From NCBI GenBank assembly GCA_002104905.1, contig MCFE01000406.1, positions 1-64,000 of the forward strand: DNA of 64,000 nucleotides, in the 5' to 3' direction. The notes beneath the pieces were generated by a model. It made no database searches. It had not been told where the DNA came from and was given only the letters and a program-made list of their open reading frames with translations. The translations under genes and the position numbers were made by a program. The stretch comes from Basidiobolus meristosporus CBS 931.73 (Eukaryota > Fungi > Basidiobolomycota). How positions within the stretch are numbered: the first letter of the stretch is position 1; every line of letters starts with the position of its first letter. Below are positions 53,295 to 54,074 of the stretch, one piece after another.

Positions 53295-54074
53295 TCATTT
53301 TGATTTTACATTTTGACATAGCCAACTGAGTCCTTCAAACAAGCCCTCCCCTGTGGTAGCACATGACGGGTGAACGTACCAGTTTCGCTCGCGCATTTTA
53401 TGAAGCCCAAGCTTTTCGGTTACTTCAGTGGGCGACATTGCTACAAGGAAATCCAGGTTATTCAAGCAGAATTGAGCCCTGCTTTAGAGGAGGCATACCT
53501 GTAGGGAGATCTTGCTTGTTTGCAAAGATCAACAAAAGGCAATCCTTCATTTCTCGGTCGCTTACAATTCGGTGCAATTCTTGTCGAGCTTCATCAATAC
53601 GATCCCGGTCGTGTGAGTCAACAACGAATATGAGCCCCTGTGTACCAGTGTAATAATGCCGCCAAAGAGGCCTGATTTTATCTTGGCCTCCAACATCCTA
53701 AATGTACAGTGGTAAACAGAGTAAAGTAGAAAATGGGTGGTTGATTAGCTTTTTTTGACATTCAACCGGTCAGTGTGTGGGCTTACCCAAACGTTGAATT
53801 TGACGTTTTTGTATGTAACAGTTTCAACGTTGAAACCAACAGTCGGGATGGTTGTAACAGACTGGTTCAATTTCAATTTGTACAAAATGGCTGTAAAACG
53901 CAAAATATAAGGGTTAAGGATAGCATGCCAATCGGGCATCTACGTGAAATAACGGATTGCACAGATATAGAAAAGGATACTAGTTTTTCCTGCTGCATCC
54001 AAGCCTAACATCAATATACGCATTTCCTTGTTGCCAAAGAGTCTACCGAGCATTCTCGACAATGAAGCCCCCAT
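53295..54074 (-). CDS. ARF6: ADP-ribosylation factor 6, 3 introns
   Basis: [93 protein letters not shown]...NKQD...[16 protein letters not shown]; residues typical of class III ARF. Confidence 0.97.
53891..53980 (-). other. U12-type (minor spliceosome) GT-AG intron, 90 nt
   Basis: 5' site GTATCCTTT and perfect branch site TCCTTAAC (53920-53913). Removal restores GKT-T-ILYKL. Confidence 0.9.

Follow-up and report, generated by a model that had tools for sequence, protein, structure and literature searches.

The ARF6 gene of Basidiobolus meristosporus CBS 931.73 is very probably interrupted by a genuine U12-type (minor) GT-AG intron, which occupies an old, inherited position and most likely represents a neutral relic with constitutive splicing. 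Donor and branch-site sequences of the minor class are placed between exon borders that fit the protein to the base, and U12-type signals recur at the same site in orthologous ARF6 genes. The gene is located on the minus strand of the window (the whole stretch of DNA analysed here, 64,000 nucleotides in length). The intron belongs as an ordinary case to a set already known and catalogued, and is mildly unusual in its 3′ architecture.

Gene structure and splice signals

The coding sequence of ARF6 comprises four exons with a total of 543 nt, corresponding to 180 codons and a stop codon (Table 1). Each exon was translated separately in its own frame and the translation was then matched to the Pfam Arf profile; the matched ranges follow one another along the profile with small gaps that represent split codons, and the exon translations are therefore contiguous. 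Arf motifs, including NKQD and the N-terminal Met-Gly, were found in the gene by direct reading. When compared with solved structures, exon 3 matched ARF6 best, with 124 bits, while the top ARF1 reached 110 bits, and the predicted product belongs to the ARF6-type (class III) Arf small GTPases.

Table 1. Positions of the ARF6 exons, introns and splice signals and of the second minor intron in the window.
Feature	Position	Strand	Details
ARF6 exon 1, coding part	53981..54074	-	Pfam Arf 2-28, E 9.2e-7; start codon, Gly2 and P-loop GLDAAGKT, with the following Thr codon begun by one base
ARF6 intron 1, U12-type GT-AG	53891..53980	-	90 nt, phase 1
Minor-type 5′ splice site GTATCCTTT	53972..53980	-	9/9 to RTATCCTTT
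Minor-type branch-point sequence TCCTTAAC	53913..53920	-	8/8
Spacer and 3′ splice site	53891..53912	-	20-nt spacer with 15/20 pyrimidines, then AG
ARF6 exon 2	53787..53890	-	Pfam Arf 30-63, E 3.5e-11
ARF6 intron 2, U2-type	53698..53786	-	GTAAGC..CTAAT..TAG, 89 nt, phase 0
ARF6 exon 3 (DVGGQ and NKQD motifs)	53499..53697	-	Pfam Arf 64-128, E 8.5e-29
ARF6 intron 3, U2-type	53441..53498	-	GTATGC..TAG, 58 nt, phase 1
ARF6 exon 4, coding part with stop codon	53295..53440	-	Pfam Arf 131-174, E 4.9e-10
RabGAP-TBC gene, AT-AC U12-type intron	44690..44762	-	ATATCCTTT, TTCTTAAC, 11 nt to AC; 73 nt

Intron 1 opens with GTATCCTTTT and closes with ...TTTTACAG. With GGA AAA ACT A at the end of exon 1 and CC ATT TTG at the beginning of exon 2, the intron falls behind the first base of the codon for the second Thr in GKTT (phase 1), which places it directly after GLDAAGKT, where the P-loop has its C-terminal edge; such a phase fits the tendency of minor introns to avoid phase 0. 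The RTATCCTTT donor and the branch sequence are the features that define U12-type introns (Turunen et al., 2013; PMC3584512), and both are present here without a mismatch. Exon positions -2/-1 read TA instead of AG, the dinucleotide that favours U1 at this place (Olthof et al., 2024; PMC11347168). The candidate branch adenosine is 53914 or 53915, which leaves 23–24 nt to the end of the intron. The terminal AG keeps the reading frame, while the AC two bases upstream breaks it and, besides, would be no partner for a GT donor. The earlier note had called a U12-type GT-AG intron over this interval, had placed it in phase 1 between GKT and the following Thr and had described the other two ARF6 introns as U2-type. 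The call is upheld by donor, branch site and orthologous U12 introns, the placement is exact to the base, and introns 2 and 3 are indeed of the U2 type.

On the accepted model for minor splicing, donor and branch site would be bound jointly by the U11/U12 di-snRNP, following which the U4atac/U6atac.U5 tri-snRNP would join. Adenosine 53914 or 53915 would then attack the donor, and exon 1 would be ligated to the first in-frame AG downstream, which would rebuild the codon for the second Thr in GKTT. Intron 1 is accordingly a predicted substrate of the minor spliceosome, and its splicing is expected to be constitutive. The 64-kb window yielded no Rfam match to an snRNA or to any other family; minor snRNA genes have been reported in basal fungi (Olthof et al., 2024; PMC11347168).

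A second minor intron, of the AT-AC subtype, is located 9.1 kb from the ARF6 intron (Table 1). It is of the same spliceosome class, in the same genome and of similar size, and differs from the ARF6 intron in its AT-AC ends, in its branch sequence TTCTTAAC and in its classical 11-nt spacing. The earlier statement that two U12 introns lie within 10 kb thus stands, whereas the addition that both reside in small-GTPase genes does not: one exon of the host gene gives a weak RabGAP-TBC match (E 3.4e-4), and the product would be a Rab GTPase-activating protein and not a small GTPase. The suspicion of a minor-intron density that is high for a fungus was correct and had already been published, the count for B. 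meristosporus being 249 minor introns (0.554%), a density unsurpassed among fungi (Larue and Roy, 2023; PMC10639083), or 237 (0.5%), with the classes listed in MIDB (Olthof et al., 2024; PMC11347168). The ARF6 intron shares the genus and the intron kind with this published complement, is carried by a conserved old gene and is very likely among the catalogued B. meristosporus minor introns. For ~250 minor introns in a genome which we take to be roughly 90 Mb in size, about seven pairs within 10 kb are expected by chance, and the occurrence of two minor introns within 10 kb is therefore unremarkable.

The same site in other ARF6 genes

Orthologous sites were sought with a query consisting of exon 1 and its read-through into the intron, the reading frame that a gene caller of the prokaryotic kind would draw, by which 310 short ARF6 fragments were matched and 120 of them listed. 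Ser follows GKT in 102 of the 120 listed fragments, which corresponds to A/GT at the same base and in the same phase. An S-I-L reading, implying a GTATCCTN donor, is present in 51 of the 120 listed fragments; the read-through in the query slightly favours such matches, yet only 326 candidates existed and all of them were scored. Other Ser readings account for 50 of those listed (donors GTAAR, GTGAR, GTATG, GTAAY, GTACN or GTGCN), and a single S-I-F read-through corresponds to a donor GTAT[ACT]... The remaining listed fragments, 18 in number, continue with TILYK and represent either spliced models or genes without an intron at this site.

All ten S-I-L loci for which DNA was fetched carry a GTATCCTT donor at the same site; conservation of position had been proposed earlier as a check, and U12-type introns do take up the orthologous position in other species. 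The introns of these loci measure 147–1580 nt where both ends lie on fetched DNA (that of L012 stops before exon 2) and are otherwise unrelated in sequence. A canonical branch site (TCCTTAAC or TTCCTTGAC) is located 10–12 nt from the 3′ end at four of the ten loci, namely L003 (intron of 917 nt, TTCCTTGAC, 11 nt), L010 (461 nt, TCCTTAAC, 12 nt), L009 (1580 nt, TTCCTTGAC, 10 nt) and the fungal-type L011 (152 nt, TTCCTTGAC, 11 nt), the exon 2 protein of which is identical to that of the window. L001 and L002 (introns of 200 and 198 nt) have the branch sequence (C/T)TCTTAAC at 25 nt from the 3′ end; the Glomeromycota-like L007 (147 nt) offers TCATTAAC at 29 nt or the weaker AATTAAC at 17 nt, and L008 (1131 nt) gives a weak branch match only. 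As compared with these orthologues, the intron of the window has the same codon, phase and GTATCCTT donor and a U12-type branch sequence, and differs in length and in branch-to-3′ spacing. A comparison of L001 with L002 was considered as a test of constraint and set aside, since the two introns are ~85% identical throughout and hence too close to show selection on the branch site. At L009 (10001-11700), a CAG situated 3 nt past the branch adenosine is skipped and the CAG at 10 nt is used, an example of the minimum-distance rule that U12 3′ splice sites follow.

The position is also occupied by introns of the other class. L004, L005 and L006 are interrupted at the identical base by a 36-nt U2-type intron, which has GTACTA as its donor and ACTAAC as its branch sequence; these three (L004 at 1501-1734) are ENA/Logan metagenome contigs of a GC-richer eukaryote, with an extra intron inside ARF6 exon 2. 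In the genomic ARF6 reading frames P0035, P0043 and P0046, the frame is unbroken through GKTTILYK and breaks only after FNVW; the P-loop intron has been lost in these lineages and the next intron position (phase 0, after Trp) kept, as in the window.

With respect to the taxa behind these sequences, an MFS gene beside L001 and L002 encodes a product 91% identical to a Gigaspora margarita protein, and both loci are therefore attributed to Glomeromycota. Among the fragments with U2-type donors, one has an exon 1 identical to that of the NCBI Lobosporangium transversale ARF6 (Mortierellomycota), and a group is one residue off the Rhizopus azygosporus ARF6 (Mucorales). The N-terminus KLLSKIFGNKEM is common to 43 of the 51 S-I-L fragments. 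Of the loci of this type, three have exon 2 within the DNA that was fetched, namely L003, L008 and L010, and in these exon 2 starts with ILYKLKLG, extended to KLKLGQ in L003 and L010, and L009 has the N-terminus KLVSK and an exon 2 that reads KMKLGQ. The exon 1/2 type of L003, L008, L009 and L010 is presumably that of invertebrate-animal ARF6, and their introns of 0.5–1.6 kb are consistent with an animal type; conservation of the U12 intron in animal ARF6 is thus probable on the basis of these sequence features.

Age, class and 3′ architecture of the intron

Depending on the gene, the orthologous site is U12-type, U2-type or empty, and the intron is therefore old and not a local gain. Judging from the donors and branch sites compared, Basidiobolus, Glomeromycota-like fungi and animal-type ARF6 genes appear to have retained the U12 type at this site; a conversion to the U2 type appears to have taken place in Mucorales-like and Mortierella-like fungi, and a loss of the intron in others. 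We incline towards a single ancient minor-intron position, at least as old as the common ancestor of fungi and animals, that exists today in three states (U12-type, U2-type, the latter also in further fungal-type genes, and absent) and that shows, in its U12 form, a doubled spacing and a pyrimidine tract in some fungi. If true, this would provide a natural series for the conversion of minor to major introns at one site; such a conversion route, as well as the non-zero phase bias of minor introns, is described in the fungal survey (Larue and Roy, 2023; PMC10639083).

The unusual part of the intron is its 3′ half. Counted from A53914, the branch site is 23 nt away from the 3′ splice site, and the spacer (75% pyrimidine) is longer and more pyrimidine-rich than that of a typical U12-type intron. 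U12-type introns are typically without a distinct polypyrimidine tract, and we know of no hard upper limit for their branch-to-3′ distance. The pyrimidine content of the spacer could just mirror a T-rich intron. The optimal distance of 11–13 nt is given as characteristic of the class and is not listed among its defining features (Turunen et al., 2013; PMC3584512). In comparison with the canonical animal and plant U12-type GT-AG introns of the same review, the ARF6 intron has the same RTATCCTTT donor, TCCTTAAC branch sequence, GT-AG ends and non-zero phase, and is likewise the sole such intron of its gene and hosted by the vesicular-transport class, but departs from them in its spacing and in the pyrimidine-rich spacer. 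The Glomeromycota orthologues L001 and L002 are also long in this respect, and the RabGAP intron of the same window is not; the long spacing therefore belongs to the ARF6 intron in some fungi and not to the machinery of the organism.

Such a 3′ half would also be compatible with a hybrid or decaying minor intron, in which both 5′ splice site and branch site are still of the minor type and the remainder (23-nt spacing, pyrimidine tract and CAG) has drifted towards the major type. Splicing would then be inefficient, with partial retention, or reliant on 3′ factors that the major spliceosome also uses, and the intron could be an intermediate towards the U2-type state of other fungi. The departure from the optimal distance, the 15 pyrimidines among the 20 spacer bases, the long spacing in Glomeromycota-like orthologues (L007 included) and the fact that Mucorales-like and Mortierella-like ARF6 genes have donors of the U2 type at this site all speak for such decay, as does the report of longer branch-point distances in minor-like introns that fail to respond when the minor spliceosome is inhibited than in responsive ones (Olthof et al., 2024; PMC11347168). 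Nevertheless, we consider it unlikely: donor and branch site are both perfect, unlike what decay would be expected to leave, AG is absent from -2/-1, the 11-nt spacing of the RabGAP intron indicates that the machinery is not generally shifted, and a long spacing common to a different fungal phylum must long have been tolerated. It is extremely improbable that the intron is of the ordinary U2 type, with no more than a chance resemblance to the U12 type, and is spliced out by the major spliceosome. The GT-AG ends would suit such a reading, as would the CTTAAC, which is near to the U2 CTRAY and placed at a U2-like distance with a pyrimidine tract after it, and neither 8-mer, taken singly, is more frequent in the window than chance predicts (GTATCCTT, three observed against 2.07 expected; TCCTTAAC, three against 2.30). 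However, the combined signal, defined as an [A/G]TATCCTT donor, a strict TCCTTAAC within 200 nt and then AG or AC, arose in simulated 64-kb windows just 0.027 times per window with both strands counted, and at ARF6 it coincides to the base with exon borders set independently by protein homology. Donor positions +4 to +6 (TCC) and exon positions -2/-1 (TA), moreover, mismatch the U1 consensus, and GTATCCTT recurs at the exact site in the ten fetched loci, which belong to unrelated eukaryotes and have unalignable introns. The other matches to GTATCCTT or ATATCCTT in the window, at 13991-13998 (+), 17629-17636 (-) and 11601-11608 (-), were rejected as chance occurrences, since they have no U12 branch site nearby and no gene structure to back them and their number is that expected by chance.

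For the genuine minor intron thus preferred, a regulatory role may be weighed against plain inheritance. Vesicle-mediated transport is over-represented among the minor-intron genes of Rhizophagus (2.57-fold, FDR 0.012; Larue and Roy, 2023; PMC10639083), and vesicular transport is among the gene classes with U12 introns (Turunen et al., 2013; PMC3584512). Both genes of the window fall into this class, long known for such introns, and trafficking genes like ARF6 and the RabGAP gene 9 kb off might accordingly be co-regulated via rate-limiting minor splicing. Such co-regulation is quite unlikely in our view, as inheritance explains the enrichment equally well where an intron position is old, the chance pairs expected genome-wide include several within 10 kb, and the sequence of the window offers no argument for it. 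The survey that reports the enrichment itself favours neutral processes overall and describes minor-intron evolution as largely neutral (Larue and Roy, 2023; PMC10639083). Given the old age of the ARF6 intron, inheritance is a simpler account than co-regulation.

Significance of the site and neighbouring genes

A literature search revealed no paper relevantly linking ARF6, Arf51F or ADP-ribosylation factor with U12-type or minor introns, an ARF6 entry was absent from the text supplements of the minor-intron literature, and a search with the 12-residue N-terminal peptide returned no match. By itself, the ARF6 intron is of little weight, coming as it does from the fungus richest in minor introns and from a class of genes for which enrichment had been established before. 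Its value is twofold: it provides a clean, deeply conserved marker site that could serve for tracking minor-to-major conversion, and, with perfect 5′ and branch signals at a spacing twice the accepted optimum, it could serve to probe how strict the spacing is in fungi.

ARF6 is adjoined by an aquaporin (MIP) reading frame at 55019-55996 (-), for which the 299-aa product counted from the first ATG (55022-55918) has no exact counterpart among the gene products on record. An exact look-up among recorded gene products also gave no match for the product of a 488-aa MFS transporter reading frame at 33111-34574 (-). This frame is 88% identical to a B. ranarum protein and 92% identical to a shorter, 416-aa model of B. 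meristosporus CBS 931.73, by which the genus Basidiobolus is confirmed; the lack of an exact match may reflect another assembly, a paralogue or a truncated public model. Amid otherwise fungal matches, the same product matched proteins of the bdelloid rotifers Adineta, Rotaria and Didymodactylos at 63–67%, a distribution that suggests a transfer of the MFS gene from fungi to rotifers.
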